From Auanema rhodensis (Eukaryota > Animalia > Nematoda), in contig OZ059896.1 of NCBI GenBank assembly GCA_964057225.1, forward strand, positions 18,042,001 to 18,106,000: 64,000 bases of DNA, in the 5' to 3' direction. A program made the position numbers and the translations under genes. Shown here piece by piece: positions 8,501-57,983 of the stretch (position 1 is the first letter of the stretch; each line of letters starts with the position of its first letter). Under the pieces are notes generated by a model. The model ran no database searches. It had not been told where the DNA came from and worked only from the letters and a program-made list of their open reading frames with translations.

Positions 8501-11500
8501 TATCTCTTCTAGACATTCACACATGATGTTAAAGACGGTGCGCATAGAACGATGAGAGATGGACGAGCCCCTTCAGAAGGAAGACGATCTGCGATGAGAA
8601 GGAAGCTGGAGAGAGATAGTAACTGACTGAAGCGGTGAATGAGAGAAAGGGAGTAGCCGCGAGGTCTCGCACAAGAAGTTGAACCAATATGAGAAACGAT
8701 TCTATTCATTTGCTTAGGAGTAGAAGAAAACGAAGAAGATGGTAGGCTGAGGCCAGCGACCGGATACGATTTAGACCCATCGCTCCTTCACCAACACAGA
8801 TTGCTAAGATTGTTTGCTTCTGCTCATAACTTGACATTTCTTCACACCCTCAAACTCATAGATCGAAAGAGCATAACTCATTAAGCTAATGATTCATATA
8901 AGCAGTTCGAGCAAACTCCAAGCATAGTCTTGTTTTTGTCGCATCTCTCTTCTCAACAGACTAATTATCTTTCAATCAAAATTTAATCAGCTTCTCTTAA
9001 GCACTTTTATACAGCAGAAGCGCTGCTATAGGAGATGAGTCGCAAACAACGATTAAGAAACTTTAATACGCTTCTACTAGTCTATCATCTTAGCATGTTG
9101 TTTCGTGAGTCTTCTCAACTTTATAAATCTATATTTACGATCTTGTTTTCTCATTCATCGTTATTATATTCATCCTTTTCATCAATGGAATCGTTTTTTC
9201 CTTCTCAATGTAGGATTCACTTTCATTTTTTTTCATCTTTTATATTGCATGTAATAGTTGAAATTATTGCTGCATGATCACTAACGAGGAGAATGATGTA
9301 TCCGTATCTAGTATGGGATGTTGGACCAGAATTTTGAGTTAATCATCATATCAATATATTCATGATGTCGGAATTTCCTTTACAATGACTTTACTATACC
9401 ATATGAAAATAAGATTATACATATACATATATGGTTTTGAACGTAGAATATTGTCTATGACCTTGTCTGACACTGGATGGATAGCGCCAATGAGATTGAC
9501 AACGATGACGGCGACAACCAGGACATCATGACCACGATAATGTAGATGAAAACGATTATCCGCCGTATGTTGTAGACGGCACATAAGCTGTAGTCTGGCG
9601 GAGTTCTAGATGTGTCGCTGTCCCTCCTTCAATCTCTTTACCGTCTTAGCCAGTCAGCAAGATGTCAAAGAAACATGATCTACGCAACTGGTTCGTCGGC
9701 TTTGGTACTCGCTTTCGGAAGACATGTAGGAAGAGAGAGAGAGGAAGTGTTATGGTAAAATAATAGATGCTTAGAGAATAGGTGAAACATGCATGAACAG
9801 AGGAAGAACTTGGTTTTCGTCTTCTTCTTCTTTCATTTTTTTGTGTATATCTTGTCTCTTAGTTGCATCTGCCATAAGATTGTTGAAAGTGAAAGAAATT
9901 GTAGAAAGAATGTGATGATGATAGCTGACAAAACAATTATGTTTATATGAATGAATTGAATATAAAGATATACAACATGTAAAATCTGATGATGATGATT
10001 ATTGTCAATACACTAATCGAATCATAATTCAAAAGTATGTTTAATCCAATATATATCGTTTGTCTATAATAAGAATCTTAACGAATCTTTGAGGTATTTC
10101 TTGAATATGCTTCTACACATCTAAGCAGCCAGCGTTTCTTTTAAGAACATAATGCTTCGGATGGATCTCTATATAGTCATCATCCCGCAACAACCTGCCG
10201 AAAGCATTTTACAATTCTATGTTTCAATGCGGAATAGAGTTCAAAAACTAGTTCCAGCCTCATCTTGAGTATTATGCTCTCATTCTTATCTTCCTTTGTA
10301 AGCTTAGACCAAAATTTACTAGTTCAGTAACAAAGCATTTGGGTGATGAGCTGCATGTTGACGGTATATTTTGATTCAAAACAAGATATACATACTATTG
10401 TGGATTAAATCTACACTTGTATACAATCTGAAGTTATTGAAGATATTGAGAAGAAGGATATATGTATTGAAGTTTCTAAATGAATCTTTCGAGATACTAC
10501 TGATGACGGAGAAGTTGATATGACATACATGTCTGCAATATCTTCATCTAACTCAAGCCGGAGTTTGACATATGAGCAACGTCAACAATGCTTGTGTGAC
10601 TGTCAGATATTCTTCCATTTTACGTTTCTTAATCATCACATTCATCATCATCATCTGACCCTATGAACTTCGCAGCATGTTTGCTTGCTTTCTTGACTTC
10701 TAAATCCGGAAAATGCTGAGGAAATAAGAGCCATAAACGGAAAAGAAATGAAATTCAGTTGTCAATCATGATTCAGCTATATCAAAGCATTAGCTTCAAA
10801 TTTTCAAATAAATGTCAGTTTTGATCAAAAAAAAGTAGAACATAAGACCTGTTTCACTAAAATTCAGTTGATCCTCCTTTTTTTAAATTTTCAAATAGTT
10901 TTTGTTCTTATAAAAATGAATCGATATCATTGACTATAAAAGAAATAAATGTCATTTAGGAATTGTCGTGAAGGAGATGAATGAATGACCAAAAAAAGCC
11001 AAAGGTACAACTCTATTAGAACAGTCATTCGTTTTCCCTTTTAAGTTTTTAATTTGTTAGGGCAAGCATTCTATTAGACATTGAGTGACCAGAAATGAGT
11101 AAGAAGGTGAAGATTGAGATAGGTATATAGATATTAAGAGATGGAAAGACATTAAGAAAGACAGAGAGTGTGAGCATAATGAGGAGAGCATGAGAGAAGA
11201 GAGGTAAGTAGTGAGAAAGATGATGAGAGACTAGGACGAAGATATAAATCGATTGAAGAATATTGTTAATGTCAAGGCTAAATAAAGGAAATAATAACTG
11301 TAAATGAAAGTGTCTTTAACCATTTCCCTCCATAATTATATAATTTATAATTAATTTCAATTAAAATAATATTTCGCCTTCCTTTCTTCTAGTCTTTTAT
11401 GAGAAAAAAAGCCGAAAAAAAAAGTAAAATACCACATACCTCTGAAGATCATCATATGACATGGCTCTTGCATATGGATACATTGGTGCAGGTGGCTGAT

Positions 11501-31013: not shown

Positions 31014-31477
31014 ATGAAATCATCTCCTATTCGTTCTGCTCGTCCAGCTACTTCTCTTTCACCTAAAGGACGTGTTCGTAAGAGTTCTGAAGAACGAAAA
31101 GAAAAGTTGAAGGTATGTATTACTTCATATTCTTAATTTCAATTTCAATTTCATTTTTTTGATTCAAAATTCATTTATTTTGTTTCTTTGGCATTTTTAA
31201 TATCTAAATTTAAATTTATATTTTAATATATTTAACTAAAGAAAAATTGAATTTTCAATTACTCAGTTATTCTATCCAATTTCTAATTTTTTTTGTTTTT
31301 AAGGTCGAAGCTACATTACGTCGACTTCTTGGATCTGATGATGATTCATCTCAACTCGATGTCGTTCTCTCTGCTATTCAATACATTCGTGATCTTCAAC
31401 ACCAATTGGATTGTCATCAAGAAAATATTCTTCCATCAGGTTTTGAGCAGCTTTTTGAGAAAGCTGTTCGAACATGA
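31014..31477 (+). CDS. Small Id/extramacrochaetae-like HLH protein lacking a canonical basic region (HLH-A, 90 aa)
   Basis: Exon 1 31014-31112, intron GTATGT...TTTTAAG, exon 2 31304-31477: MKSSPIRSARPATSLSPKGRVRKSSEERKEKLK|VEATLRRLLGSDDDSSQLDVVLSAIQYIRDLQHQLDCHQENILPSGFEQLFEKAVRT*. Helix-2 signature S-x-L-D-V-V-x-x-A-I-x-Y-I-x-x-L-Q. Confidence 0.8.
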
Positions 31478-36866: not shown

Positions 36867-39800
36867 AACAAGCAATACAGTTATTATACTTATATCCAGC
36901 CTTAAAAGCTTAGATTATATAATAGTATTCATATATGACGTCATCATTCTCACATTACTTGAAAGATTAAAAGTTACAGGTGAGAAGGCTTCGATTATGA
37001 TCGTAACACATGTAAGATGAGCTAAGAATATTCTCTATTCACGACCTCTCCTTCTACAGAATTTCATTTTGGATATGATGACGTCATTTATCTTTTAATC
37101 CGGAAAATTGTTCGATAAGTGTATGAATGAAGGAATTTTCGGATTTTCTACGCATAGTTAATGAGCTAGCTATTGGTAAATTATGTGAAAAGTCGAATAT
37201 ATTATGCAGAATAGAGATAAAAGGTCTTAAGACCTATAAATGTAGATGAGATAGATAAGACGAGAAGAGGTGATAGTCTGAGGAAACTGTATATCTGGGA
37301 AATAGATTGAGGATGAGAGGTAACAATATCCATATAGTAAAACTTAGATAAGCTATATGCATGAGAAAGTGCTTTGATGTAGTTTTAACATAATATTCTC
37401 AGACAAATGAATAAGTATCTATAGGTATAAGAGATTTATATCTTCCTTCCCAGATCATAAGTCAAGCATATCTTATGGAAAACGGTCAAAAGGTCATCAC
37501 CACATTTGAAGAAATATATAAAAAAGTTTGTTTTTTAAATTTAAAATAATAAAAAATAATTATTTTTATAAATTATAATAAATAATTAAACTTTATAATT
37601 CCCTCTAATAGATTTTTTAAAAGACTGTCGTGACGATAGCTAAATAACCATATTGTCTTTAACCTTTTGCTTCCAACTTGTTCAGCTTGTACCGGATATG
37701 CTTTTGATTTACTTAACCTGATACCAAAACCATAAGCATATAGCTTAAGTATACTTCTTAACAATACATTTGTTCTTTCTATTGGATCGAAGTATCAGAT
37801 GACAGAATGAATGCCGAAGATGGTATATGGTTATCTAAAGAATGCCGTTGCCGTAGTATTCAACTTGAAGTATCTCAAACAGATGTTTTTCTTCTATGTA
37901 TGTTCTTCTTCATATTGGTCGATTGGATAAACAGCTTATAAAGAGAATATTACTAAATATAGTAATATAACAATATTATTTAGTTAAATATAAATATAGT
38001 AGTTTATTCATTTCAAATCAAAGGCGGAATGATGTAACAATATCAGCAGTAGCGTGACTTCCAGCAGATTTTCAAGAATACTTGTAGTAAACTTGAGTAA
38101 ACAACCTTACAAGCGCATACAAGTTGTTGAGCTATATTATATTTCTCATGTTACTTCTTCTGTCGGCTTGATTCTCTTTATGTCAACGTTGAACAAGAGA
38201 CTTTTCGCACCTACTACTACTACTTCTACAACTACTACTACACCTACTCCTGCTACTCATTCTCTTCTCTCTCTCTCTCTCTCTATTTCTCTTTCTCTCT
38301 TTCATCTTATAGTTGATTAACCTATGTATTTTTGGAAAGAAAGAAAAAACTTTGATTCTCACACATCCATCTCAAATATCTTATTGTATGATGAACGACA
38401 ACGTCACATTATAATTAGTCTCGTACAGAAAGTTTGAACAGAACAATAGAATTCTATCGATTCCAGGGATTTGACTATTCTCATATTACGTATTATAACA
38501 TATAATCTAAGCGAATAACTTATGAAAGCAATTAGAAAAAAGAAAGAAAAACTTTTATTTATTATCAAATTACTTCATAATTGCTCAGAAAACTTCGTTA
38601 TATACGATATTTCTACTCAATTTACATTATTCAACATACAACTTGAGAAACTTTGAAAAAAAAGGTTTTTTTTTGGGATCAGAAAAGTAATAGAGAAACG
38701 GTCCCTTGTTTACCTGTTTAACTATTTTAAAACTTTCTATAACTATAATATCTAAATAAGTTTGGATGAACTCTAAGATGTTGCATCTCTTAAGTACCTA
38801 TTAAGGTATTAAGAGAGTCTAATATCTCGACGTCTATTGATGAATAACAATTGGCTTCGGAACGAAAAAAAAGTAAATTAAAGGCCTGAAAACATGAATT
38901 ACAGTCGAGAATTAGTCCATTCATACTATATCCCTCACTTATATTCTCTCTGTGATTCCAGCCGTCATAACTATAGGTTCTCAACCTGTTGTAAAGATGA
39001 AAATGACAGAGCGAAAGAGCTTTGAGATTAGATGGGCGCCGGAAATTCCGGGATTATGAATGTCATTTGTGTCGATTCTCTAGTTGTTGCCGCTATTGAC
39101 ACAAGTTTTCTGTACCTATATATCCAGAATAACCCCATAATTAGTATAGTTAGATGAATATTTTTTTGAAATTAGAAGATTTAACATGTAATTGTAATAT
39201 TACTTAGTATATGTTGTGAATAAAAAGATAAATATCTATTTATATATAACATTATATTCATTTAACCTATCTTTTCCCTTATTTTCTCTTTATCTTCATC
39301 TTCTTTTCTCTTTATTTCTTTTTCTCTTAGTCATCCATCTGTCAGATGTTCCCACCACTTTCTTACCGCATGCTCGTCTCGGTTCATCAACTGAAAATCG
39401 TTTATGACCATCCTGGGAAAGAGTTTAAATCATGAAACTTCTTCTTTAATATTGCATCAGAAAATCTCATAAAAAACGTAAAAACGTAGTTTTCAACGTC
39501 TACGGAGCATTAGCAGAATTTATTGTATTGCTGACTCATGATACATGCATTTCATGTTTATACTTTAAGCTTTCTCATAAATGCTATGCTACAGCAGCTG
39601 AAATCAAGAAAAACCTAATGTAAAATATGTGAAAATGTCTATAAATCAAGTGTGAAATTCAGTAAGCTCATCAATTTAGCATTATGCTTCCAAATTATCC
39701 GTGAAGCATCTCCAAAGATGCAGTCTAGTCAGTCTTCTTTCTCACCACCTAGAGTGAAAATGAGGGTTGTTTGTCTGAATCTCGTCTCAATTCTGTCAGC

Positions 39801-42800
39801 TTTCAATCCAAAATATTGACTATTGTATCAATAAATATTGGCATATATTGATGGTTAACGATGATGAAGATGATATGTGTGAAACAAGCTGCTTGACCAT
39901 CTGAGAGCATTACAAGAGAGAAATAGAGAGAGAGAGAGAAAGAGGGAGAAAGAGAGAGAGAGAAAAACAATTAATTCTTTGAATTAATTAGCTTTTCTCA
40001 AGAGGTACAGTTAGTAGAGCATAGTCACACATTACAAATACATCTACATACATACAGCCATACAGTGTGCTTTACTCTATCTATATGCTTGTCGATGTCC
40101 CACTGTGAACTGTGGCACTCACAGCTGAGTGTCAAATACAGTGATTCTTCCTATTTCTCGTAATTTATTATACTATTTTCATTATTTTATATAATTTCTT
40201 TATTTTAATTTACTTTAGCAAGTATGGAATCAATCTTATGTTCAACTTATGTGAATAAGACACCATTTCTTAGACTGACAAATCTAGAAAATTTGAACTT
40301 ACAACCTATAATTATAGTTTCATTCGATACAAATAAAATTACTTTTTTGAGCAAATCGTATTGTTGGATGGTTGATGATGATGATCATCATCATGTTGCC
40401 AAATTAACTGTTCTGTTGTGACAAATGACTCCACAATTAGCTAAAAAGTCGAGGACGAACCAAAGTAATAAATGGATTGATGAGTCAGATGTCTTGACTA
40501 CTACCTTCAAGTCGTAAAAATGCCTCAACTTACCTTATAACATTAAAACCTCTTGAGTCAAGGATTATATAAGAATATATATGTATTAACTATAATTGAA
40601 ATAGAATTAAGATGAAAACACATGTCATTACACGATATCTCACAATGATTCTACACCATATGTGTGTGTGTATATCTGTATGGTTAACTGTTCAAAGTAC
40701 AACCTATTAAGCCGTATTCACAAAGAAGTGACCAAGTTTCAACATGAACTTTCTCAGGCAACCTGTTGAACATGAATACACTAAATGTGACAAAGAAAAT
40801 GACAGAAAAACCTATTTTTCTGGATGAGATATAATCAGATAGAGAATGTCCCAGAGGGGGTGGTTGAAGTAACACCTGTTTTCTACAATAGCCAATAGTT
40901 CATTCAATGTATCTGTTGTGTCTATTTGAAACTTGCCATTTATATTTAGAAGATAGAAACATATTTATTGCATTTTTTTTTTCATTCAGAACATTAAAAA
41001 TCGTCAATAAATTAAAAGAAAAACGATAGATATTTAAGTTAGAAGAGATTAAATTCTATTAGATTTTCATTACTACATATGGTCATTATCATATATTTAT
41101 CTTGATCTTAAACTATTTTTACTATTTTCTTATATATTTCAATTTCATCATCAAGTAGATTTACAGATCAAATTTTCTGTGTGAAAAACATTTGGATACG
41201 ATACACCTCCATTAATCTATAAACCCTCCATCTACAGCTTATAGCCACAAAGCAGAATACGAAAATACTTTTTGAAGAACGGTATTACTTTGATTTTTCA
41301 CAGTTCCATGCTTCGTTTGATCCTTTTTCCGGAATAAAGCATCAGAGGAAGCTCGTCCGATTCCCATAATGCTCCGAAGGACATCCCTATTAGCTTTATG
41401 AGGCAGACAAATCGCCCATCTTACTGTTTTCTCTTTAATATCTTCTTTTGGTCTCTGGTTATGTGATGGATTAGACCGGAAGTTGTTAACCTAGAACAAG
41501 TAATATAAGGTCAAATTGACATGTTATTGAAGATAAATCTTAAATTCTAGTTAAATATACTAACTTATTCAATGGTAAGCACGTAACACGATGCTTCTCT
41601 TGTAATCGCTACTGTCAACGGCGGGAATTGCCAACAACACAAAAGAGCACATGTGGACAAGCTAATGAATAAACCACATGTTGAATTGGTTTGGCTGTTC
41701 AGACGAATAAAGCAGATTCGATAACTAGCTGATCTTTTACAAATCTCTTTTCCAATTTTCTCTCAAAATCAAATAACTACATATATCTATATAGTTATAA
41801 GATTATAAGATACATAAAGAAACTATCTCATTGTATACTTTGGATTTCAATATTCATCTGAATATAGTATTCGAGATACTGTGCTGATGATTGGACGTCT
41901 ATGAAAATGTGTTTATTCAGTTATTGATCACATCATTTGTTAGGTTTTACCACCATATAATCATATATTATGATTCGAAGCCATTGTATAATAGCAAACA
42001 GCTTCCGACAGTGTTATAACTGTCTGTAACCGTCTGTTGATGACCACAGGCATTACCGCCAAGGCTTCTATTCCAGCTGTCGTTTTGCTGGTACTGCTGT
42101 TGCTGATGTTGGCATAACGTAATGGAATCAGTCGGCTGTCTCTTAAGTCTAACGGATCATGAACAGAAGCGTGCTGTTCTACGACAATGAGCGGCATGAT
42201 CTATCACTCATTAGGCTGGCAAGCTGGCTGTCAGACAGTTAAGACGCTTTGCTGATCACGAAGACACTATGTGTATCGGCATGCAGCACAGCACATTACA
42301 AATGCTTCAAATGGACACGTACATCTGCATTAGATGTGTGAGTGTGTATGTATGCCCGCTGTTAGCTACAGCTGTTGCGTCATATTTTTGTATTTTCAGG
42401 GTTTTGTGCATATGTTTATCCCAAATAAAGACAAAAGCCTTTATTGCCAAATGTATGTTAAAAGAAGAATAAATATGTGATCAATGTAATTCATTTGATG
42501 AGCCAAGACATGTATTTCTTTAACAATCCGACGATCATAATGCTTTACCTCTTTATTCTTTCTTTATTGCTCCCCCTCATACCTATTTCTGTTTTTCTTT
42601 TTGAACCCTACAAATAGATCCGACAAAGGACCACACGTAGTACACATATTAACGTATCCCATAGCTTAAACAATACGATCCATGATCTATCTCTCAGCCT
42701 ATATATGAGCCTGTTATAAGCATTGAATAGGCAATGAGCGGAAAATGTTATATATTGAAAGGTTATACTGCTTAAAAGCCTGAAGTGTCGTTCATGACAA

Positions 42801-45800
42801 GCAGCCTGTTCAGTTGAATGATTACCCTCATCTGCTAGGCTGTTTAAGATCTAAAAGACAATAAGGTTGTTTCAAGTTGCTTGTTCGTAACGATGACTAT
42901 GATGCGGATGACGATTAGCGGCATGTGATTGTCAACCGATCATTTTGAAAAGCGATTGTTGAGTTATATTGTTTGAAGAGACTTCAAAGAGTGTTTTTGT
43001 GAATGTAGTATGGTAGGTGAAAACATAATTGATCATCCATTTGCTTTTGAATATAATATGATGTACAGTGGATATAAATATAATTTTAATTAGGATAACT
43101 ATATGTGTAGTATAGAATATAATGGATAAAAGAACATACAATATCCTAGAAAGAGAGAGAGAGAGAGGGAGGGAGAGAGAGAGAGAGGAAGATCTTTGTA
43201 TACCAACATGTATCACCGGAATAAGGATAGAACGAGGTGAATGAAAAAGGAAAAAACAACATGTGAAGGGGAAGTGAGATATGGATGAGTGGGAAAGGTT
43301 GAGCAAAGAAAGAAAACCCAATTGAGATACTGTGTATGAGATGTTCCGAGAGTTCTAAAGATCTATCTTCTATATAATCAACCAAATTGCTTGTCCAATT
43401 CAAAGGAAATGAGCGAAAGAACAGCAATGATATAGATTCTATTCAACGTATTCTATTCAGTATATTCAATAAGCTATTGAAATCAAAATATGAAAAAAAA
43501 AATAAAAGAGACGGTTCATATGAATGAAGTTCAAAGGATTTTCAATCTGCTCATAGACTCAGTCCGCCTCATCAAACTCAATTTCATTTCCAATTCGGTC
43601 TTTAAACGAAAAAAGAAACCGTCCAATTAAGGTAATTCATTTCTTTGAAATCACATTCATGTTACAATTTCAATTATTAATATAAAGAAAAGAAAAAGAA
43701 GAAATATAGTTCAATAATACCGTAGTTTATAACTAAAAATTGTATTAATTGAAGGAATGAAAGTTACTATCTATCATTTTTGAAAATAAAGTCTAGAAAC
43801 TGTACAAATCTAGGTGAATACTGGCATTTCTTTTGAAATATGTCTTGAGAATTTTTTAAAATCATGATGAGAGTATATAGAAAGATAGAGAAATAGAGAA
43901 TCTGATTGACTGTCCTAATTCAATTACCTTGTGTAGTATACTATTACTACCGTATACTATGATAGATAGATAAAAACGTTTGTAATTTATGTTTTTGTAC
44001 GCTGATGAGAAAGTTTAAAACCTGTTTTACGATTGAAATAAACTTCTTCTCTTTACAGTAAGGGTCCAAGAATTATTGTTGTGATTGAAGATAGATTGAG
44101 GTAGTAGTCTCTGTAGGTCTGTCGACTTTTGTGTCCTTGAATATCCAATGAAATGAAGATGAGCTGTAAAAAAAGGAGAAAAGGCAAGCAAAAACGGTAA
44201 CGAGAGACTGAATGATTAAACGAGAGATTCAAAGAGAGGGAGAGAGATCAATGAAAAAGGATCAAGACAAATTGAATCTTTTGTTCTTGACAACCAATTC
44301 ATGTTCGAGTTGTAGTAATGCAGAGAGCATGAAGGCCATTCTATCTATACCATCGGCTTAATTTCATTTCTCTTTTACCAGTTCAATATAATATCCTGCT
44401 TAGTATCGATGTAGGTCAGTTTTATGATTTGAACTCATTTTATGCTAATTTTCACGTAACTAGGTGAATAGTAGAATCAATATACTCAAATATACTATTG
44501 GTGCCAAGAATGTGCAGAACGGTTGAAAATGCTCTCTCCTTATCTTCATATTCTGTTACCCCTTCTCTAACATTTCCTCTCTCTCTCTATCTCTCCCTCT
44601 CTTATTTTCTCTCTCTATTTCTCTTATCCTTTACTTTCTCATGACATGTTAACCTTCTCCTAAGAAAGGAGAAAGACTTGTTGACCTGTCTCTGATTATT
44701 GTATCGCTGTTGCCAAACAATCTGTGGATCCTGAATGGTTGACCCTATGCTATTGACGTACTGTTGGCTCAAAAGATAAAAAAATCTGAAAATTGTTTGC
44801 TTGAAATCCGTGAGTCAGATTCTACCGCATCAGATAGGATCTGATTCTTCTGTCTTATAGATCGTATGTGTGTGGACAGCTGGCCTCTTCAACCTATCTC
44901 GATTACACAGATTAGAGTCCAGTTTTTCATTTAATTTTTTTCTGTTTAGATTTCATTGCATTCTGATAGTACACGTCAGATTGTTCACTAAACTCAAGTA
45001 AGAATACAATGAAATACAGTCAAAGATCCAGAAGTTAAAGGAAGATATTGAAAACAATGACGATAAGGGCACAATCGGCTGTTTTAGCCTCTAGAATTTT
45101 GAAAATTTCAAAACATCGAGGTACACGCCATCAGCATACTCCATATGGATTTTGAAAATATCGCAGCCAGCCGGCCGTCAGAAGTGTCAGCTGGAATTCC
45201 TGGCATTGCTCACAGAAACTATAATGTCTTCAGGACATCTGTGAATCTCTCTTTATCTTCCCTCTGTTCAACTCTCTTGGCTCGTTCTCCTTTCGTTCTC
45301 TCTCTTCCTCTTTCAATTTGGCTCTTTATCTCTACTCTCTCAAAAGTATGTGCAAGAGAACTCGAAAGAAGTTGTGTCTGTGTGAGTTTCAATGTGAATT
45401 CTTCTGGACTATCCAGATGAGAATTAAAGACGACGACGAACATTCAATAAGAGCCACATGTTTTCACGTATGTTCATCATTGCAAAAAGTGCGAAAGAGT
45501 CCAGCTACCGGAAATTGAATAATCTTCCTGAATATGAAAAGCTGTACAACTCACTGTACTGTTTTACTTTCATCGTTCGTTCTTCTACTTTTCCTAATAG
45601 AAGGAAGAACTTCTGGTTTCACATCAAACGCTTTAAGACAATTTGATTTCTCTCTTGTCAATATTGCTTACGGCGAAGTAGCATAAGAAGAAATTCCGAT
45701 CAACATCTTCATATTGCCGACGACGTCAATCATACATGATCCAATTACCTTCAGCTCCAGGTTATAAGTCGATAATCCGAAATAGTCCCATGGGCATCGG

Positions 45801-47239
45801 CAACAACAAAACCATATTTAACGGTTTTTAACCATTTTTTTCTCTCTGCCATTTCCTAAGCTGCGACAGGTTTTTGATGGCATATGCAATCGGTTGTTAT
45901 CTTTTCCTTTTTCATCATGCCCACCACTTCATATTGTCACATACACTCTCTCTCTCTCCCTCTCTCCCTCTCTCTTGCTCTTTGTGTCTCTAGGCTTATT
46001 AGAGATATCAAGGTAAAAATCTTTTTGTCGGTTAACGTGTCTGTCACTCTTTTCACGTAAATGCCAATCTAGAAATCTGTAGCGTTGAACTGTTAAATCT
46101 GACAACATTCTTTTAGTATAATTAGCCATCTATCGGCATCTTTTTCAATAAAAATTATAAAAAAAAAGGAAAAATGTTGTTCAATCAGTAATAGAAAACA
46201 TTAGATAGATATGAATACAATCTGAATAAACCATTAACGGAAAATCTTCTAACAACAACAAACATGCAACTCTTGCGTCATGGCGGCAAACTTTAAGAGA
46301 TAAAAAAGAAAAAAATAGTTTTAATTGGAAGATATTACGCCTATATATGGGTGAGGATAATAAAAATATTTGGAATACAGATATCACCTAAGTTTACTCA
46401 TATGCTCATAAGTTGTTTCATTGAAAAACATATAAGATGACTTTGTGGATTTGCTCTTCTTCTTCTATTTCACCTTATAGCACATGCTCTATAGAATAGC
46501 TTATGTGCAGATGTTTTTTTTTTGAAAAACCAAGCACATAAGCCACGGAAAGAGACAGAATCAATCCGTTGTCAGCGGCAAGCTGCTGAACGGGTGGTCA
46601 GTTGCGTCAGAAAGCTGTGTACTGCCTTGTGTTCTTCTTTATATTGTACTTTTTTCCTTCATATAATTAACTAATATTATGAGGAAATCTGGTTAAGTAT
46701 ACTATATGTATATAGTTATTAAGTAGAAATATGCACTAAACAGGTCAAGTCACTGCATGAATGAATGCGTGAGATGGCTTTAAGCCAGGTATGGAAGTGT
46801 TGCAAGTGGTATACGAAGGATCCAATATTGCTTTGAGCAGATGGATAGAAGAAATGTTTTTTTATCTTTTGAAAATAAAAAAAGAAAATATAATTTGTAT
46901 AAATTTTTAATTTTATATACTGTATATAGTATATATAAATAATATAATTACATCATTAATTATAAAATAAACAAATAAACAAACAAATTGTCTATGCACA
47001 ACCCGATACTAGGCATCACAGAATGAGATTGATAACGATAAAGCTTATTATAAGCTTTTAAAGAGACGAGAACAACGGAAAAAAGCGAGACATACATACA
47101 GAAAAAATATTTCTTGATTTGGTTATGAGTAAAACGATTAGATTACGACGTAGAAGGCACTTGATAAGCATTTTTGACATTTGTTTTGAACAGCAACTGA
47201 AGCAACTTGCTCAAGCTGTTGTCGACTCTTATCTCCAAT

Positions 47240-48179
47240 TTAGCGTTTCTTCTCAATAGACTTTCTCTTCTTAACGCGCTGATTGCGGCGGTTATGACTG
47301 AGTACGGTAGCGGCTGGTAGGCCGGCAAGCATTTCTGAAAAAAATGAAAAATTAGGAAAACAGTTCAAGTTTAAATAGGTTTATTATATAGTTTTGGGCA
47401 TATATTTGTAGTTAAATTTGGGTTTAGTAAGAAGATTATAAGGAAAAAGGTCATCTGATATTGAATATCGTTACGAAGGTAGATGAAACTGAATAGAATT
47501 GAGGCAAAGAAGGGTTAAAAGTGGTTGAGAAGAATAGGAGTGTGAGTAGAAAACGAGAGAAGAATGACCTCGAACTAGCTGATCAGCAAGAAAGTTTCAT
47601 CTAAGAGGTCTAATCGAGATAACGACTTAATTGCAACCTTGTCCCCTCTCAGAGTATGAGCTACGGGAAATGGTAGTAATCCGTCTGATTTTAAAAATAA
47701 AAGCAAACTGTATAGTGGATGACAAAAAAATTGAAGAAAAACCAAAACAAGTGAAGACGACTGAAGTCGTTGTTTGGAATTGAAACATCCCCCCATTACG
47801 ATAAAAAACTGTGAACAAAAAAGAAAAAAAGAAGAGGAATAGAGTGAATATCATGGGAAAATGAAAATATTAAAGGATATTTTGTAAAAAGAGAAGATAT
47901 TGTTTGAAAGAAAAACTTAAAATTACCTCTGGGAAGAGATCCTTTTTGGACACGAGCAATGATGGTGGCTTCAAGTTGTTGGATGTAATCGACAGCATTT
48001 AGAAGCATATCGGTAGCATTCTTGTTAGCTGGTGATGGTGGAAGTAAAGCTGATAGACGACGTAGTTCAATCTGTTCGGCACGTGTAAGGGCTGGAACTC
48101 GTTGAGCTTCACGTGCTTGGGCTTTGAATGAAGTAGTTTGGATGGATGGCTTAGAAGTCTTAGGACTTGGCTTAGGCAT
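47240..48179 (-). CDS. Second small emc/Id-like HLH protein lacking a canonical basic region (HLH-B, ~115 aa)
   Basis: Exon 1 48179-47927, intron GTAATT...TTTCAG, exon 2 47334-47240: MPKPSPKTSKP...LTRAEQIELRRLSALLPPSPANKNATDMLLNAVDYIQQLEATIIARVQKGSLPR|EMLAGLPAATVLSHNRRNQRVKKRKSIEKKR*. Confidence 0.8.
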
Positions 48180-48249
48180 CGTGATGAGAGTTTCGACGAG
48201 TTAGAATACAACGACGATAGATATCCGGCTTCAGACAATAAATTTGTCT

Positions 48250-48530
48250 GAGTTGACAGTGGTTGAGAGCGAACGAGGTGTTGGCAGTCGAGGTGAGACT
48301 CGAATTGACGAAGGTCGAAAGAATGTGGGAGGGGCAGATCAGATCTGAAGGAGGCGGGGCTTAACGCGGGGTGGGGAGGAAGAGCAAGGGTGGGCTGGTC
48401 GTCGGCAAGTGCAATTGCTTTGATACCGTTACAGACAGATATTAATGTAAATAACTGTATAAATGAAGGAGAGGCAGGTAGAGAGAGAGAGAGAGATTGA
48501 AAGAGAGAAAGAGAGAGAGAGAGATTGGGA
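48250..48530 (-). promoter_or_regulatory. GC-box-rich promoter of HLH-B
   Basis: GGCGGGGC, GGGGTGGGG, GGGTGGGCT and GGGAGGGG (+ strand reading) at 48326-48396, followed further upstream by a GA/CT repeat at 48480-48524. Confidence 0.55.
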
Positions 48531-51500
48531 GGGTTAGAAAGAAGGTGAATTACTCATTTCATCAAAAAAGGAAATAATACCAAGAGATGTTATTCCCAAC
48601 CCTTATTACCGTGGGAAAATAATCTTATAAGATAAACCTTTCCTCAGATCGTATTGATTGTAGATAAAGATAAAGAAAATATACTCCTTGTCTCGTCTAC
48701 TAAATAGCTTCAAATGATTCCAAAATATTTTATTTACGAAATCGAACGAATATTCAAATTTTTCCGGGAATTTAAGGTAAAATGAATGTTAGAACAGTTG
48801 TTCAATCTCTATACCAAGAGTATACTTCATCTAATTTGAAGCAATAAATTCCAAATGAACGTTCAACATTCAGTATACAAGATTTTGCTAGCAACTGTTC
48901 TTGACGTGAAGAAACTAGCAAATCACTTTCTGATCACCATATAAGAAAATGACCTGAGGCAATACGATGAGAGAAAAACATAAATTATCTGAAAGAAAGA
49001 TTGAAGATGATTGTCAGTATTGTACAATTCATTTATCTTCATTCATGAAGCTTCTGTCTCAATTGCCTCTGTCAACGTGTCTGACAGCTTTATATACACA
49101 GATTTCAATTTAATTAAAATTTTGTATTTTATTCATTGTCTTCAACTTAAATATCAATTTGTCTTATAAAATTCAAGCATTATAGAGATTTTAATCAGTT
49201 AATTTCTCATAGTAAAAATAAAAAAGTTAATTATACAATCACGAGAAAAATACATAATATAACCAAAACTAAGAGATTTTATTTATATTTTAATCTTATA
49301 ACTATATCTACTGTAATCATGAGAATATTTTAAATGTATTACTATATACCATATCATTCATAGATAAAAAGTTCACAAAGAATCAAAGAAATATGAAGAG
49401 AAAGAGAGAGAAAGAGAACAGAGAACAGAGTTAGAAAGAGATCTAACAAAGGTTACAGATCATTTGTCTATGTATAGATGTAATAAATCATCTTATTAAC
49501 TATATCTATAGTTAGTTATTTAGTTAATTATGTATTTTTTATAATTTATATTCTTGAACTAGTACATATAGAAAGCATTATTGTCATTAAAACTTCTTTT
49601 CTTACCTGGATTAGAATGGCTCGCAGACACATACACAGACAAGAATATCCAGGTAAACAATAAACAAAAAGAAAAAAAAGGTTCTAAATCTCCAACTAAA
49701 TAAACAATTGGTTATATAATCCATATGTCAATCAGCTTTTATTTCATTTTAGGCCACACCTGTTTTTTTCTTTTCCAAACTTAGTAAAAACGGATATGGA
49801 TTGACTCAACTTTTAAAAGAAAATAGATGGAAGTTGGGAGAGAGACGACCTATTCACAAGATTCTGATTGACCTTATCCGGAACAAACTTTATTAGGCCT
49901 ATTGGCATAAAGCCAATAGGAATGTTCATGTTCTTGCCTTACTTGTTCACACTTTTTATTCTTCAATATTCACAACCTCTAATGAATTAGGCGAGAATAT
50001 AAATTGAGGGAACGATGTATGAGTTGTATCTCAGTTGAGATTACATATTGTTCATTCTAGAAGGCTTTATCTGCTGTTCTTACTTGTATTCGTTTTTCTT
50101 TCCATTCACCTGTAAAATTTACATATAAAGCATGGAACATCTGCTACAACCTTATATAGTAGGCAATGTTTGAAGGAGAAGCTTTTGATTTGAACTCATT
50201 TAAAGGTATTCCGACAACAGTTCAAGTGGACAGCTTAGATGGGGTAGGTATCAAGCAATTCTCTAACAAATTCCTTAATGGGGGTTAAAGCCATTTGATA
50301 TCTACGGCAGATTCTTTGCCATCTCTTATTCTGTCTTCAAGATGGTTGATGATGATGATGTACTTATCGTCTGTTTATTCAGAGCGGCACTTATAGCTAA
50401 TGTCACAAAGCCCTATAACAGCATATCCATACAAGTGATGCACAAGACATTACGATGACAATCTGAAAACGCCAGCTGAGCAAGTTCTTCCTTTCCGTTT
50501 GTTCTCTCACACTTTTTCCGCTTTTATTGGTTTTTCTCTCTCTTTATGAAAGCGTTGGTTACCGCAAATCATTAAAAAATTGTCTTGTAGGTCAGATATA
50601 CATAGAACGATGTACTTCAGATGATGTCTTCATTCAAGTTATGTGTGAAAGTAAAGTTTTCCGCCATAAGTTGTAGATTCCCATTTTAGAAGAACGAAAG
50701 ACTGGCTCAGACATCCAAGAAAAAGCTGAGAATTCACAGAGTAATGTAGCATTACAAACCAGATTGTTGTTGTGCTGTTTGTTGATATTGCTATGAACAT
50801 ATTTCGAAAGTTCTGGTTAACATCGTGTGTTCGTTAAGATGGAACGAGAGTTAGAAGTATGTGTATGTATGCTGAAGTACGTATGTGGCTGAAAAAGCAC
50901 ATCTGGATCGGCAACTGTCGTCAATAAACGACACCGATGTCCATATGTCCAGCATAGGAACCCACGTTCGTCTGACAGTTTTCGTGTGTTTGTGTGAGTA
51001 TAAATGTAAGAAAAACGACGAAGATGTCAGATAATAGAGACAATTTCTTGAAGAACTGTATGCTTAATGTATCTCAACTGTCTAAAGTTTATTGTGTGGA
51101 TTTGGAACTATGTGTGCTCATACTCATAGTTCGAACGAATATTTTTGAGAGATTGAGGATGAATTCAAATCAATCAACCAGAAGATAATAGTTATACAAG
51201 TCATTTAATACGGTAATTCATTTAATTAGGTTAACTCATGAGTCAGAAGACAAGGATTAAATAGAAAACTTTTTAGTCAAGGTCATATATCACTATGGTA
51301 TTCTTTCTTTCATATCTTCAATTTCCTTTTTTTTTTATTCAATGAATATTAATTTTACATTTAATTTATCCTAATTACAATATTATTTATTATTTTTATT
51401 TATTATTAAAATATCGAAAAAGGATCAGAAATAGGAATTAATATATTCATTTCAAATAAAAAAAAATACAACTTTTTCCATTTAATCTTCTACTCTACTT

Positions 51501-54500
51501 AATATTTTTTATATAATTATCTTATATTCCTAGATGATTGTATAGAATACCACGAGAATACATGAAATTCTTTGTCAAGAAAAGCTGAAATATGAAATAA
51601 GTAAACGACAAATCTCAGCAGGAGGTTGATGAGGATGATGTGTCATGATCAGATGAGGCAATTTATGAAAAATTTGCATAAAATTCAATCGAGATGACAG
51701 ACAGATAGGTTAGATGGACGAACCAGAAGCCAGAAGACATTTATCGTCCTGTTGCCATCTAGTTATGCTTGGTGAAATCACAATACTAAACTGAAGGAGG
51801 CAAGAATAAGCAAAAAGTCAAGGATTTTCATCTAAATTAAAGATGAATAATCAGCGAAAAACCATAATAAGATGTCATGAAACCTATAATTGCATAGAAT
51901 TTTAGAGGAAAAAAAGAAAAAAATTCGAAGATTGTTGTAGAAAAAGAAAAAGATTAAGGGATAAGCGTTAGATCTTTTACATCTTTTATATTTCAACTTG
52001 AATATTATATAGTAGATTCATTGGTCAGTAATTACAAATTGTATTCGATTCATACTAATTATATGTCGGTATTTACTACTGTATCTTGTTTCTCTAACCT
52101 AGAATATCTAAAAACTATTGAAATGTAGTTCGAACAGCTGGCACATTCATCTTCATTCATTCAGCTAACCTTTCATCAAGTAGATTTGCGCGAAATATAG
52201 GATACAAATGAAAGTACTTTCTATATTAAATTAAATATTTTGTTACAAAGTAATATGAATTTATAAAGTTTTTTTTAATTTAAAAGAAAAGGTTTAGCAA
52301 GTTTCAAGTTTTAACTGAACTACAAGTACTGTAGAAGAGGACGATTTATTCAGTTATAGGTATGATTGGTTTATAAAATCATTTAAATTTCCATTTAAGC
52401 TTTAAAGAAACTTCTTTATTTTTCTTTTATTTGAAAAAAAAGAATTATTTACTCATATATAGATAGATAATAACTGTATAAACATTAATTAATCTAAACG
52501 GAAGCTATTATATTTGTTATCGGATTAGAGCCAAACTGTAGCAAAAAAAACGGAACATCAAATAAGATGCCGCTAATTGCTCAAGGTGTTTCAGATGCCT
52601 TTCTTGCGTTCTATCTCTTTTCGGTTCGAATCCAATCCAATCTGTTTAATCTCTATCTTACATCATATAGATATTGGCTCAAGGGCTTAACCTGTCCGGA
52701 TACTGACTAACCTTTCAAGTTCGTTACTCTACCGAAAACCCAGTGGCAAATGCTATTAGATTACATGTTCATGTGCATCTGATAGTCGATGAGAAAGTTT
52801 TAAAATAACCGGGGGAATTACTGATTAAAGTTTATCAAAAAGAAGTTACGTTCGAGGATGTAATAATCAGATATAGAATTAAGAATGGAATTTAGAAAAT
52901 ATCAAAGTCTGGCTACAACATATCAACTTAAAATAATTGTGATTAAATTAATATTAATGAGTTAATATAAGTAATTATAACTTCAAAATAAGTATAAATC
53001 TTTCTGTTTGACATGAACTAAACACATATACAGCCTTCAAGCATTTTCTATATTTTTCGGATGCTTGGAAGCGTATTTTCTGGCATGTGGTCAAGTAATT
53101 AGTCAAGTGATACTTCACCTAATCGACGTCATACCATATTCGGTAAATGTATTGAATATATGTCTAAAAGTCTCTTATATTCATTATGCATGGATATCTG
53201 TTCTCGGTGGTTCTGCTCTTTTGAGAAAAGTGTGTCTGGTCAGCCGTTCGTTTGATGTTTACCGTCTTCAAGTGTTTCAGGAACCTTTTGTTTCATCATC
53301 ACCAACCACATCCTCATCATAATCACCAGTCGTCGTCAACATAACGGTCATCATATTCACTTGCCTCTTCTTCTTTTCTTTCAGCTCATACATATGGAAA
53401 AGCCGATAGACAGATGAGCAGATGGTCAAATTTGGCACAAAAAAAAAGCGAAAAAGGATAAGAGCAGCTATGTGTCTGAAAGGAAGGAAAACACCAAAAA
53501 AATGCCGCAAAACCGACAGCCAGGTACAACAAGGGGATACGAATGTGATCCTCATCCGCATAACAGACGAACAATTGCTATAGCATAACAGCACATGCTC
53601 TCATTACCTTCTGACGGCATTTATAAGGATGAAATGATCAAAATTCAATACCTATATACATAGTATATCCTTGACTAATTAGAGTATATTCAATGACATT
53701 AATTATATTTTTTTCTTTAATTCGTTTTACCCAAAATATATTATTTTCTTAAAACAGGAAATAGGGAAAAATTACGGAATAGACATATATGAGCGGGACT
53801 AGATAACTATAACTAACAATCACATAATTATATGTACATGTTAATGTAATCTTGAAGTTTTATACAATATTCCATATATCAGCTAATTTTTCTTAAATTT
53901 CATTGTCAATTGATATGAGACAATCGGTGGCTTGAAAAATGTTTTATGTGGATGACGTCATCGTTTTGTTTTTGAAATGGTTATGGATGCCGACATGAGC
54001 GTTATAGAAGATATTGAGCAATAAGTTGTAAACAATCTAGCAAAATGACATATAAAACCATAGAACCCTATAAGGTTAAAAGAGAAAAAAGAAAGAGCAG
54101 CTGCCAATTTTATCTCATAATTTCGTTGTCTGTATGTTGTTTATGTCGCAATGTTTCAAAGAAAAAAAACATAAACATATACTGTTATATGATATTTCTA
54201 ATATTGAAATATGTATTATTATATCTTAAACTTGAATAGAGAATAATATTATATAATAAACGAGTTTTATAAGCTATCCATATAGCAGCAGCATAATTCA
54301 CATGTTCTTTTGGTTGCAACATGTGCTAGTGATGCTGGATCATAGATGTATGACACCTAAAAGAATTGCCGAAAAATGATTTGATTGGCCTGGTATTATT
54401 CTTTTTTTTATTAATTTTTCCTTTATCTCTTGTCCTATTTCATCTTTTTGTTCCTAAATTGGTCTGAACTCATCAGTCAGCCTGCATACAGCGATGTTGC

Positions 54501-55805
54501 GTCATCACCTCTCTATAGGCTGTATGGTATTGCAGACAAATCAGAAAACGTGTGTTGAACGTATTAACCAATTGAACGGTTACATCCAAGGATTTTCAGG
54601 CACCCTGCTGGCTAACAAAACCGGCTGAGGAACAGTTGGAATACAGTTAGATGAAGAACTACCGCAACCTGAAACATGGCATTCCATAAACGAAATTGAC
54701 ATCTCAACGAAACAAATCGGCTTCAAATTCAACCTCGATGTTCGTTCTTCAATGCATGCCACACAAAGTGATGTTCAATTATACTTTGCGGCTGAATATT
54801 TTGTGTGAAAGGGACCGGTATTGTATCGTTTAAGCCAAAGAACAAAACCAATCTACACAACTAAGGAAGATTCTATTTTTTGTTTTTCACATTGCATAAT
54901 AGACTACTTTGATTAAATAGATGTTTATATTGAAAGTAAGGAAAACCTTAGGAAAACTTTTATTGACTCTCGCTTATAAACTCCCCCCCCCCTTCTCAAT
55001 ATCATTACTCGTCTCTCAAAGAACCTGAAAGAATTGTTCACAAGTGTCTTAGAGTGTGAAACCAAAAAGTTGAAAGTTAATCAGGACAGCAGAAGACTCA
55101 TGTGACTCTTTCTTCACCTTATTTATCATTCCAATATTAAGGTGAAATGACCGTGAACGATTAAAATTAAACGATAAGACATTGAGTTGTACCATTTCCT
55201 GTTGAGCTAATAACAGAGCAGAAGGTGACTTCACGATTAGTTGATTCACTAGTTGCTATATTAGGTAATTATTCTAGGGATTACGTCATCCTACACATGT
55301 AGCGATGATAGCACGGTTGACCGGCCCCATGCATTTCCATATAGTTAATTGCATAGTCATTACAATGAATATAATCATTACCGGAAATATAGCAAATGTT
55401 AAAAAATTTATAAAAAATCTAACAAAGATAAAGATATAGTAGTTATAATAAATATAATTATGTTGGTTGTAGCTTAAGCATTAACCTGACAAGGGAATTT
55501 CTATAGATTATGCAATTTAAAAATCCATACTCGTCGTGTTAAACCAAATGTAAAAAATGCGAGTCTAAACTAAAGTTTTAAATGAAGAAAGTTAATAAAA
55601 GATGATTAAAGAACATTTCAAGTAAAAAAACCAACTAAAACAATAATTAAGTATAAAATTCCGAGAAGTAAAATCGATAATTCGCAGTTTCTTTGCACTA
55701 TGCTTGATTTAAAAATCTCTAGACCCGATAAATAGAAATGAAAACGAATAAATTACAATTAAGCTCATTATGTATATATACATATCACAAAAATCACATA
55801 CGTAT

Positions 55806-57983
55806 TTAGATAGTCTGTAGACCCATTTTTCTCATCTCAATTTCCAAATCTTTCAAATTTCTTTCCAACATGTCAACCTCTTCGAGTCTTCCAGCAGCTG
55901 CAGCTTGAGTTAAATAACTGAAACGTTACCGTTTAAATAACAGATAATCTCTTTTTAAGAATAATTGACAAACCCTTTAATGATATCTCTTTGTTCATAT
56001 AATGGATGTTGCATATCTTCTTCGTCCAAAAATGGGTTATATGATCTAAAAAAATATTATTGATCAACCTGTGAGACAAATCTTACCTTGTTTGATTCGG
56101 AGTCCAGCCTTCATCTACCGTTTTTGAACGAGAAGTAGCCGGAGTTATTGGACTGCTGTGAGAATTGACTAGTGCTGGTTTCTGAGGTAACTACAACAGT
56201 GCTTATAGGGAAAGTTTTCAATAGTTCTACTTACTACTTTCGGAGGTCGGTCAATTTGGGAAGCTCTTGATTCTTCAATTTGTTTTGCGATAATCTTTTT
56301 GTGTTGCTCAACCAGCTCCAAATATTCCTCAGGAGTTGGTAAAGAAATCATTCCGGACACAACTTCCTTAAAAGGGATGATAAAGTAAAGTTTAAAGCAT
56401 AGTATAATTACTTGAAGAGTAGTAACCGCAACATATCTAATATTTTTTCGCAATTGTTGTTCCTTCAAAGCATTTTCACTTCCGTTTTGAAGAATACTCT
56501 GGCTAAAATTATTTTCGTGCATGTATAGCAAATAATAACTTTAATAAAATACCTCAAAGCATCTATTTCTTTTTGTTTTTGATATATTTTCTGCCTCATC
56601 TCTTCAGCATCTTTTAATGTATATATAGTTTCTCCATTACTTTAAATAGAAGAATTTAGAATACCGAAAACAAAAAAACTTACTTTATACTTAAAGCCAT
56701 ACGCACGTAACCAGGTGATAATGCTGTTATTTCTCTTAAATAAATATCCAGAGTCGAATATTGCTCAGCTAAAGCTGGAGCCACATGCTGCTCCATCATT
56801 TCCTCCCTTCGACGGAGATCAGTTAGACAGGAAGTACAAACTCGAAGACATTCAGTTGCATCCTGAAACAACATAATTTATTTTCAAAACTTTTGCTTAA
56901 AAGAGACTTACTTGTTGTAGCAAAGACCCAAGGCTTCCTTCAGAACCATCATTACTTATTTTATTTACTGCTCCTTCAAAGAACATTTTCATTTTTTCTG
57001 TAGTTTTTTGTGTAATTTCTAAAAATTTGCGACCGTGCGACGGGGAGCCTTGCTGATTTGGTTGCTCAGGCTCCGGGTAGGTTACAAGAGCGGGGTTGGT
57101 TAATTTCCCTGAGAGTAGGCTAAATAATTCTAATTCAGCATGATACCTACTGGCTGATACAAACGAGAGAAATCTGCTACATTGATGGCACATCACTTTC
57201 CCACAAAGGCGACAATGATGTCGTCGTCTTGTAAGTCCAAATTTAGCAGCACAAGATGGACAAACTGCTGAATCTCTATCAGCTGACCATGGAACAATTT
57301 CTCTTTCAAAGTCTGCAACAATCAAATTCGAAAACAACAATTCGTGATAATATGGGTAAACCTTTTCGTTTAGCAGGATCACTTGGACGCTCGTTGATGA
57401 GGCGATCCAACCTAATAATCAACATATTCGTTCGCACAGCACTTTCATTCACAGAAGCATCCCGGGACTGGATGAAATACTCTTTGTGAGATCTTACAAC
57501 GCCTTAAACAAAAAAATGTTTTTAAAACATAAAACTATCTTCCGACCTATCTCTGCTCTTACAGGCGGAGGGCGAATAACAGGAGCAGCTCTTGGTCGAG
57601 TTTTTTCTTGCACGGCATTTGCATAATTTGAAAGATTGGACATACTGTTCGATACACCAACATTAACTTGTGAAAGATCCAACGAAACTTTAGCATCAAT
57701 TTTACGAATACCTCGTTTTGCTTTATCAAAAAGACCTGCGAATAAAAAAAATTTTTAAATAAATGAATGACTTAGTAAACCTTTCATGTTCTGTAAAACG
57801 ACATCAGTGAGATCATTTCCGCCTTCAGGATGAACAGCTTCAACATGAGACTGTAGGGTTGGAAAATCGCCCAAATCACACATACAGAAGGGACATATAA
57901 ATCCCTATAAAGGAATGGTGATTCATAATGTAATACACCTAATAGCAAGAAGAAACTCTTACCTGCCGTACGAGATCGGTCAT
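55806..57983 (-). CDS. rabs-5: Rabenosyn-5 (C2H2 finger, FYVE domain, NPF motif, C-terminal Rab5-binding domain)
   Basis: MTDLVRQ|GFICPFCMCDLGDFPTLQSHVEAVH; FYVE domain VPWSADRDSAVCPSCAAKFGLTRRRHHCRLCGKVMCHQCS...LRVCTSC; YNPFLDEED...QAAAAGRLEEVDMLERNLKDL; stop 55806. Confidence 0.93.

Follow-up and report, generated by a model that had tools for sequence, protein, structure and literature searches.

A nematode family of small helix-loop-helix proteins without a basic region that may act like the Id/Emc inhibitors reportedly missing from worms

The HLH-B locus of Auanema rhodensis encodes a small protein with a predicted helix-loop-helix (HLH) domain and no basic region, which by analogy may act like the Id/Emc inhibitors that are reportedly missing from worms. 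The locus lies on the minus strand of a 64,000-nucleotide stretch of contig OZ059896.1 (positions 18,042,001 to 18,106,000), hereafter called the window. Comparative data indicate that it is a real, intact two-exon gene and the ortholog of Y65A5A.1 of Caenorhabditis elegans. Y65A5A.1 is already catalogued but unstudied; what is new is the architecture, an HLH without a basic region in which helix 1 is capped, helix 2 is long and the C-terminus is a basic tail. The features of the locus are summarized in Table 1.

Table 1 Features of the HLH-B locus in window coordinates.
Feature	Positions	Strand	Remarks
Upstream conserved block	48180..48509		5' UTR and promoter-proximal; part of the blastn alignment of 47909-48509 with the Auanema sp. 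JU1783 locus, 9703-10269
Exon 1	47927..48179	-	253 nt, ends in phase 1; start codon, disordered K/S/T/P-rich N-terminus and whole HLH
Residues 1-30	48090..48179	-	Basic, low-complexity, predicted disordered (pLDDT 52-63); at the place of the bHLH basic region, with no conservation of register
Helix N-cap box L-T-R-A-E	48075..48089	-	Starts helix 1; family consensus (L/F)(S/T/N)xEE
Helix 1, residues 33-45	48045..48083	-	AlphaFold2 with family alignment, pLDDT about 87-91; L42 invariant
Loop, residues 46-54	48018..48044	-	First residues include the invariant Pro47
Helix 2, residues 55-79 (25 residues)	47943..48017	-	pLDDT 84-97; invariant Y65, I66 and L69; extension ATxxARVxxG
Intron	47335..47926	-	592 nt, phase 1; position kept across the Y65A5A.1 family
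Intronic conserved block	47555..47644		83% identity over 90 bp to the Auanema sp. JU1783 intron, against 73% for exon 1
Exon 2	47240..47334	-	95 nt including the stop codon (47240-47242); short conserved motif E-M-L-x-x-L-P, then the tail
C-terminal basic tail RRNQRVKKRKSIEKKR	47243..47290	-	K-K/R-x-K/R pattern (KKRK) and conserved Ser

We determined the gene structure from the translation of both exons and from comparison with related loci. The minus-strand frame that opens with ATG at 48179 and runs to 47928 was translated into 84 residues containing AEQIELRRLSALLPPSPANKNATDMLLNAVDYIQQLE, RVPALT and ATIIARVQKGSLPR, and the exon 2 segment (47240-47332) into MLAGLPAATVLSHNRRNQRVKKRKSIEKKR and a stop, with KKRKSIEKKR at the end. 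All of the HLH-B peptide strings quoted in the first-pass annotation of this DNA were found on the minus strand of the window. The donor (AG/gtaatt, 47927/47926) and the acceptor (ttttcag/AA, 47335/47334) join in phase 1 and form a split Glu codon, and the two exons give a product of about 115 residues. The exons were analysed one by one, and a natural ortholog, P0001 of Auanema sp. JU1783, was used as the full-length proxy.

P0001 (112 aa) was the one protein retrieved by a word search with exon 1. It is identical to HLH-B at 71% of positions in exon 1 and 67% in exon 2, which corresponds to its C-terminus, and it keeps the start and the N-terminus. Its gene has a single intron at the identical codon and phase (CTCAAG/gtaag ... 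ttatag/AAATGC), and intron 2 of C. elegans Y65A5A.1a lies at the same position. In the Y65A5A.1 family the residue at the exon junction is E, D, G or V, all with G-first codons, and several mispredicted members continue into the intron as Gly. The window is collinear with the Auanema sp. JU1783 locus over about 25 kb, including the upstream rabenosyn-like and nuclear-receptor genes.

Substitution rates between the two Auanema loci were estimated by the Nei-Gojobori method. The dN/dS ratio was 0.12 for the HLH, 0.21 for the N-terminus, 0.14 for exon 1 as a whole and 0.24 for exon 2, at a dS of about 1.0-1.5 (pS of exon 2, 0.64). Because of these low ratios, we conclude that selection constrains both exons as coding sequence. 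The use of exon 2, which the first-pass annotation had left to be checked, is borne out by its own dN/dS, by the conservation of the intron in Auanema sp. JU1783 and C. elegans and by the retention of the basic tail. HLH-B is present as a single copy in the A. rhodensis genome. Four sequencing runs, the type of which was guessed, contained 42-54% of the sampled words.

The family was collected by an exhaustive HMMER search of 1.84 billion representative proteins with a cut-off of E ≤ 0.001, which returned 39 representatives of 60-202 residues. HLH-B matched P0001 with an E-value of 4.9e-62, and the Caenorhabditis and strongylid members with 1.8e-16 to 5e-13. A helix-2 motif of the family's own is common to all 39 representatives, and HLH-B has every position of the family core motif, (L/F)(S/T/N)xEExxEL(R/K)(R/K)LxxxLP ... 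YIxxLxATVxARVxxGxLP, followed by the phase-1 intron and a basic C-terminus. Sources were examined for 21 of the 39 representatives (20 via clusters, plus P0001); 18 of these were named organisms, all of them nematodes, and three were read assemblies. The members found belong to clade V (Caenorhabditis, Heligmosomoides, Ancylostoma, Pristionchus, Mesorhabditis and Auanema), clade IV (Bursaphelenchus, Ditylenchus, Heterodera, Steinernema, Aphelenchus, Aphelenchoides, Parastrongyloides and Rhabditophanes) and clade III (Anisakis and Gnathostoma). Thus, among the named sources found so far, this appears to be a small, nematode-only family.

Two family members from Gnathostoma spinigerum, P0026 and P0038, are diverged from each other; therefore, a duplication of the gene has occurred in one or more lineages of clade III. 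A sub-group consisting of P0021, P0024, P0029 and P0039, found in read assemblies alone, has an Arg-rich stretch (ARRALLRRIQRQ) where other members have the S/T-rich segment and the capping box ahead of helix 1. This sub-group might be a more bHLH-like relative of the Y65A5A.1 family.

HLH-B and Y65A5A.1 are, on the sequence comparison, almost certainly the same gene in the same family. They have in common the HLH core, the helix-2 extension ATVxARVxNG(S/T)LP, the position of the phase-1 intron and a tail ending in EKKR. Y65A5A.1 (NP_502952.1, UniProt Q9XTW5, chromosome IV) differs from HLH-B in having one more intron, in its N-terminal region, and a second isoform, b (74 aa, against 123 aa for isoform a), that starts inside the HLH. 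The label 'BHLH domain-containing' attached to Y65A5A.1 comes from automatic annotation alone. A full-text literature search yielded no function for the gene, and its mentions in the three papers retrieved were rows of expression lists or made in passing. The first-pass annotation had asked whether homologues were already characterised as DNA-binding bHLH factors; the C. elegans ortholog is uncharacterised. Isoform b (P0048) starts at a Met just ahead of the invariant Pro and is without helix 1. HLH-B and its Auanema sp. JU1783 counterpart have Leu at that Met, so isoform b is not conservable as such.

We evaluated the HLH fold by profile comparison and structure prediction. Against the Pfam HLH model PF00010, whose gathering cut-off is 20.7 bits, exon 1 of HLH-B scored 12.6 bits (E = 0.12) with a match covering model positions 21-53 only, and P0001 scored 11.5 bits. 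Three of 43 family members matched PF00010 at E ≤ 1, the best at E = 0.12 and none at 20.7 bits or more. A genome-wide scan with the same model gave 43 canonical matches, and the HLH-B locus was absent from it at E ≤ 1.

AlphaFold2 with the 43-sequence alignment predicted helices at residues 33-45 and 55-79 (pLDDT 84-97) and disorder at residues 1-32. L42, P47, Y65, I66 and L69 are invariant in the 43 sequences, and the core positions by which an HLH is recognised are present. The best Foldseek rows were almost all (b)HLH chains, none of them significant for a domain this small. All of the best 31 rows from VIA-align were (b)HLH chains, mostly with an rmsd of 1.5-2.7 Å over 47-54 residues; their Z-scores were 4.1-5.7, and small helical models often reach a Z of about 5 by chance. 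When the family profile was compared with PDB sequences, MYC2, Pho4, ID-1 and USF came first, in register through LP ... YIxxL. The same search gave weak matches to the delta antigen and BTF3, because the family is basic and of low complexity. We also ran the family core HMM on 2166 ORF pieces from 30 canonical bHLH loci of the A. rhodensis genome, and all of the top 21 scores fell over the PF00010-matched stretch at the centre of canonical loci. The HLH fold that the first-pass annotation had proposed is thus supported by the predicted helices, by the (b)HLH structural neighbours and by the recognition of canonical HLH exons by the family HMM, and we regard this structural part as very probable. 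Helix 2, which had been described as extended, spans 25 residues in the AlphaFold2 model, and the P0001 model supports its length.

The best Foldseek and VIA-align neighbours of HLH-B were bHLH-zipper factors (MITF/TFE3, USF and SREBP), because helix 2 of HLH-B continues past the HLH. Those factors combine a basic region with a long leucine zipper, whereas the extension of HLH-B is about 10 residues long and ends in Gly-x-Leu-Pro.

The segment ahead of helix 1 was compared among 37 family members, with sites counted back from the invariant Pro as site 28 of the usual bHLH numbering. Variation is high at sites 1-13, which are rich in S, T and P. Two of the 37 members have the DNA-contacting Glu at site 9; all 37 have L, F or M at site 12, where bHLH factors have Arg, and 33 have T, S or N at site 13. 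HLH-B itself has V9, P10, L12 and T13, and its model is not helical ahead of residue 33. It therefore differs from a DNA-binding bHLH protein, having neither a basic region continuous with helix 1 nor Glu 9 nor Arg 12/13 (or 8/10), and agrees with the description of Id/Emc proteins as HLH without a basic region. The canonical bHLH exons of the A. rhodensis genome all have ERxR.

Family members carry Glu at sites 15, 16 and 19, that at site 16 in 33 of 37. The pattern (L/F)(S/T/N)xEE is a helix N-capping box with a hydrophobic staple, and because of this box the family conserves a helix start at the point where a bHLH protein runs into its basic helix. The first-pass annotation had described a helix-breaking Pro, in RVPALT, instead of a basic region. 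The lack of a basic region stands, and is stronger in that it holds family-wide; the Pro itself does not carry it, since Pro29 lies within three residues missing from P0001 and a Pro is found at that site in 10 of the 37 members.

The plant PRE/ILI proteins (PF23174, bHLH_ILI) are, like HLH-B, small HLH proteins that do not bind DNA, and they titrate bHLH partners; unlike HLH-B, they belong to another kingdom. Two family members gave weak matches to PF23174, the best of which (E = 0.0018) lies below any threshold, and a language-model search listed a plant PRE/ILI-type cluster with a score of 0.81. The PF23174 matches probably reflect a common absence of the basic region and not descent.

The most conserved family-specific feature among the 43 sequences is the extension of helix 2, ATVxARVxNG(S/T)LP, with G80 invariant and R76, V77 and L82 at least nearly invariant. 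The P0001 model has a short helix across the exon junction (ExLxxL) and a disordered tail (pLDDT 55-69). The tail sequence KK(R/K)(R/K)S(I/V/M)EKKR is kept through clade V (Caenorhabditis, Auanema and Heligmosomoides), and most other members of the family have basic tails. The pattern K-K/R-x-K/R occurs in the tails of P0001, P0002, P0003, P0004, P0043-P0047 and others as well. The pI of the whole protein is 10-12 in all members, and in most of them 8-10 of the last 20 residues are Lys or Arg. The NLS-like basic tail that the first-pass annotation had assigned to exon 2 is confirmed as a sequence feature, being conserved, predicted to be disordered and of the K-K/R-x-K/R pattern. As a pattern match only, KKRK within a disordered segment corresponds to a classical monopartite NLS. 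We infer that the tail has the form of a classical import signal and that the Ser within it lies in a sequence context typical of basophilic kinases.

By analogy with Id/Emc, we consider the chances about even that HLH-B is a dimerisation-only HLH modulator of the Id/Emc kind with its own import signal, and an inhibitory role even or slightly less probable than that. HLH-B would dimerise through its HLH, either with itself or with a bHLH partner, for which HLH-2/E protein is the obvious candidate. A heterodimer with one basic helix alone would bind the E-box poorly, so that HLH-B would modulate its partner by dimerisation only. The tail would direct nuclear import, perhaps under the control of phosphorylation at the conserved Ser, and the long helix 2 would restrict the set of possible partners. 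An NLS is not strictly required for a 13-kDa protein. In bHLH and Id proteins, site 16 of helix 1 belongs to the hydrophobic core; because it is Glu in most of the family, HLH-B may form a dimer interface different from the one in Id.

Alternatively, HLH-B might bind nucleic acids without sequence specificity, as its high pI and its two basic tails could indicate. A HLH-B dimer would then contact DNA or RNA through its N- and C-terminal tails and serve as a chromatin or nucleic-acid factor, or as a positive co-factor. Such a role agrees with the pI of 10-12 in all members, with the density of Lys and Arg at the C-terminus and with an N-terminus that is K/R-rich too in many members, and the weak profile matches to the delta antigen and BTF3 mirror the same basic, low-complexity character. 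Nevertheless, the basic residues of the N-terminus have no positional conservation, and Caenorhabditis members are without K or R in the 13 residues ahead of helix 1. The end of helix 2 is directed away from the DNA in known structures of HLH dimers, and the KKRK of the tail fits a classical import signal just as well. We therefore regard non-specific binding through the tails as unlikely.

A role outside the bHLH network was also considered, in which HLH-B would be a scaffold, homodimeric or specific to some partner, with the HLH and the long helix 2 serving for dimerisation alone in an unrelated function in the nucleus. Apart from the generic HLH positions, the helix-2 extension and GxLP (R76, V77, G80 and L82) are the most conserved part of the protein, and canonical bHLH and Id proteins are without them; the Glu at site 16 likewise departs from the usual interface. 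On the other hand, the family HMM still specifically recognises canonical HLH domains, and the structural neighbours are all HLH domains of transcription factors. A scaffold of this kind seems improbable to us, and modulation of bHLH partners by dimerisation remains the reading that we prefer.

We next compared HLH-B with Id/Emc, the textbook inhibitors of bHLH factors in flies and vertebrates. The first-pass annotation had aligned HLH-B with the HLH of Drosophila Emc, and the Emc string that it gave agrees with the published Emc HLH motif from SKLKDLVP on (Simionato 2007, additional file 7). The pattern L-x-x-L-x-x-L-x-P-x-x-P-x-N is literally common to HLH-B and Emc. The other details named as shared with Emc are present in HLH-B, but VDYI and PxxPxN are not family-wide, and YIxxL and LP, which are invariant, are generic to HLH domains.

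A specific kinship with Emc or Id was not upheld by the profile and structural comparisons. The family profile scored 15.4 bits with ID-1, against 16.8 with MYC2 and 16.3 with Pho4. The VIA-align Z-scores were 5.0 for Id2 and 4.9 for Id1, compared with 5.7 for CLOCK and 5.5 for USF2, with MYC2 and MITF within 5.2-5.7. Counted by eye, HLH-B is identical to Emc at 10 of 31 positions (32%) and to an achaete-scute-type HLH of its own genome at 12 of 31 (39%). HLH-B is thus no closer to Id/Emc, in sequence or profile, than to other HLH groups, and its resemblance to Emc is best read as that of a generic HLH, with no Id/Emc kinship detectable at the sequence level.

HLH-B could also be a genuine nematode ortholog of Id/Emc (bHLH group D) that has diverged strongly, as opposed to an HLH that lacks the basic region independently. 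The protein is small, has its HLH in the centre and is without a basic region; the Emc-type LxxLxxLxPxxPxN is found in Caenorhabditis members too (LPVSPKN); no Emc-family gene is otherwise counted in C. elegans; and one Nematostella Emc in a published table is also Arg-rich after helix 2. Against this reading stand the scores given above, in which ID-1 ranks under MYC2 and Pho4 and the Z-scores of Id1 and Id2 are tied with those of other HLH classes, and the identity count that favours the achaete-scute-type HLH; the Id helix-2 signature VSKVEILQHVIDYI is also replaced, by DPxxLxxAAxYIxQLxATV. The helix-2 motif of the family is in all 39 representatives, whose named sources are all nematode. 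Orthology with Id/Emc is therefore quite improbable in our judgement.

Shared descent aside, HLH-B resembles Id1-4 and Emc as a small HLH protein without a basic region, and with Emc it has in common, literally, the loop start LxPxxPxN. It would be expected, by analogy, to act as they do, via heterodimers unable to bind DNA. In contrast to Id1-4/Emc, its helix 1 is capped, its core site 16 is Glu and its helix 2 is about 10 residues longer. It is also a strongly basic protein with a conserved C-terminal basic tail, whereas Id proteins are not known to have a classical NLS and depend on partners for nuclear accumulation.

A chance ORF or decaying pseudogene with an accidental HLH-like motif, to which the sub-threshold Pfam match (E = 0.12) would point, is for practical purposes refuted by the orthologs in three nematode clades, the synteny of the locus, the kept intron position and phase, the dN/dS of 0.12-0.24 and the intact frame with its conserved start and stop.

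The Y65A5A.1 family is of interest because C. elegans has no Emc-family gene in a published census, which counts at least one in every other surveyed bilaterian (PMC1828162, additional file 1). The absence is taken from the count table of that survey (Simionato 2007); no paper was found that says so in words. With no Id/Emc in the C. elegans census, work on HLH-2 regulation in worms turned to other mechanisms, for example dimerisation-driven degradation (PMC4511211). An HLH protein without a basic region that is conserved in three nematode clades, and whose gene lies in gene-poor DNA with many conserved non-coding blocks, is a concrete candidate for a brake on worm bHLH factors. It is conceivable, though rather doubtful, that the Y65A5A.1 family replaces Emc/Id in nematodes and, with a capped helix 1 and its own import signal, titrates HLH-2 or another bHLH factor. 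If so, the family would provide the negative arm that has been missing from the worm bHLH network, being either of independent origin or diverged beyond recognition. If HLH-B is merely a scaffold or a non-specific nucleic-acid binder, the family would still be an undescribed HLH architecture.

We examined the conserved non-coding sequence around the gene. The intronic block showed no excess RNA structure (z = 0.5) and no Rfam match, and Rfam gave no credible match within 47000-56000; a small RNA hosted by the intron was rejected on these grounds. From its conservation, the block is possibly an intronic regulatory element. A GA/AG dinucleotide-rich tract of about 50 bp (48480-48530) is located at the edge of the promoter-proximal conserved block, about 300 bp upstream of the HLH-B start codon.

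Farther out, at least 15 blocks of 40-280 bp in 38942-45475 and 49650-53299 are 69-97% identical to the Auanema sp. JU1783 locus, for example 44132-44171 (97.5%), 44263-44314 (96%), 39327-39420 (93%) and 50895-50969 (92%). Most likely, these blocks are either regulatory elements or small genes that lack annotation. HLH-B lies in a gene-poor stretch, and 20 kb of the C. elegans locus likewise contain almost no genes. A gene-poor setting with conserved blocks is typical of developmentally regulated genes, which is only suggestive here.

The neighbouring HLH-A was rejected as a close paralog of HLH-B. In hmmsearch with the family HMM, HLH-A exon 2 scored 12.3 bits, no better than canonical bHLH exons, and tblastn with the HLH-A exons gave nothing in the Auanema sp. 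JU1783 and C. elegans loci. HLH-A exon 1 (31014-31136) matched PF09047 (MEF2_binding) weakly (E = 0.0011, 19.4 bits, cut-off 27), which is probably a low-complexity basic match.

Several canonical bHLH exons of the A. rhodensis genome are present as pairs of identical, inverted copies separated by a few kb to 22 kb: C5:11601833-11601946(+) and 11605012-11605125(-), C7:7370133/7392571 and C3:18863507/18866500. One of the pairs is an achaete-scute-type exon, the best canonical match to the Y65A5A.1 family. The pairs are either recent inverted duplications or assembly duplicates.

Two further conserved blocks, 54531-54728 (84%) and 55183-55398 (78%), are located just downstream, in gene orientation, of the stop codon of the rabenosyn-like (FYVE/Rbsn) gene and probably form part of a conserved 3' UTR.
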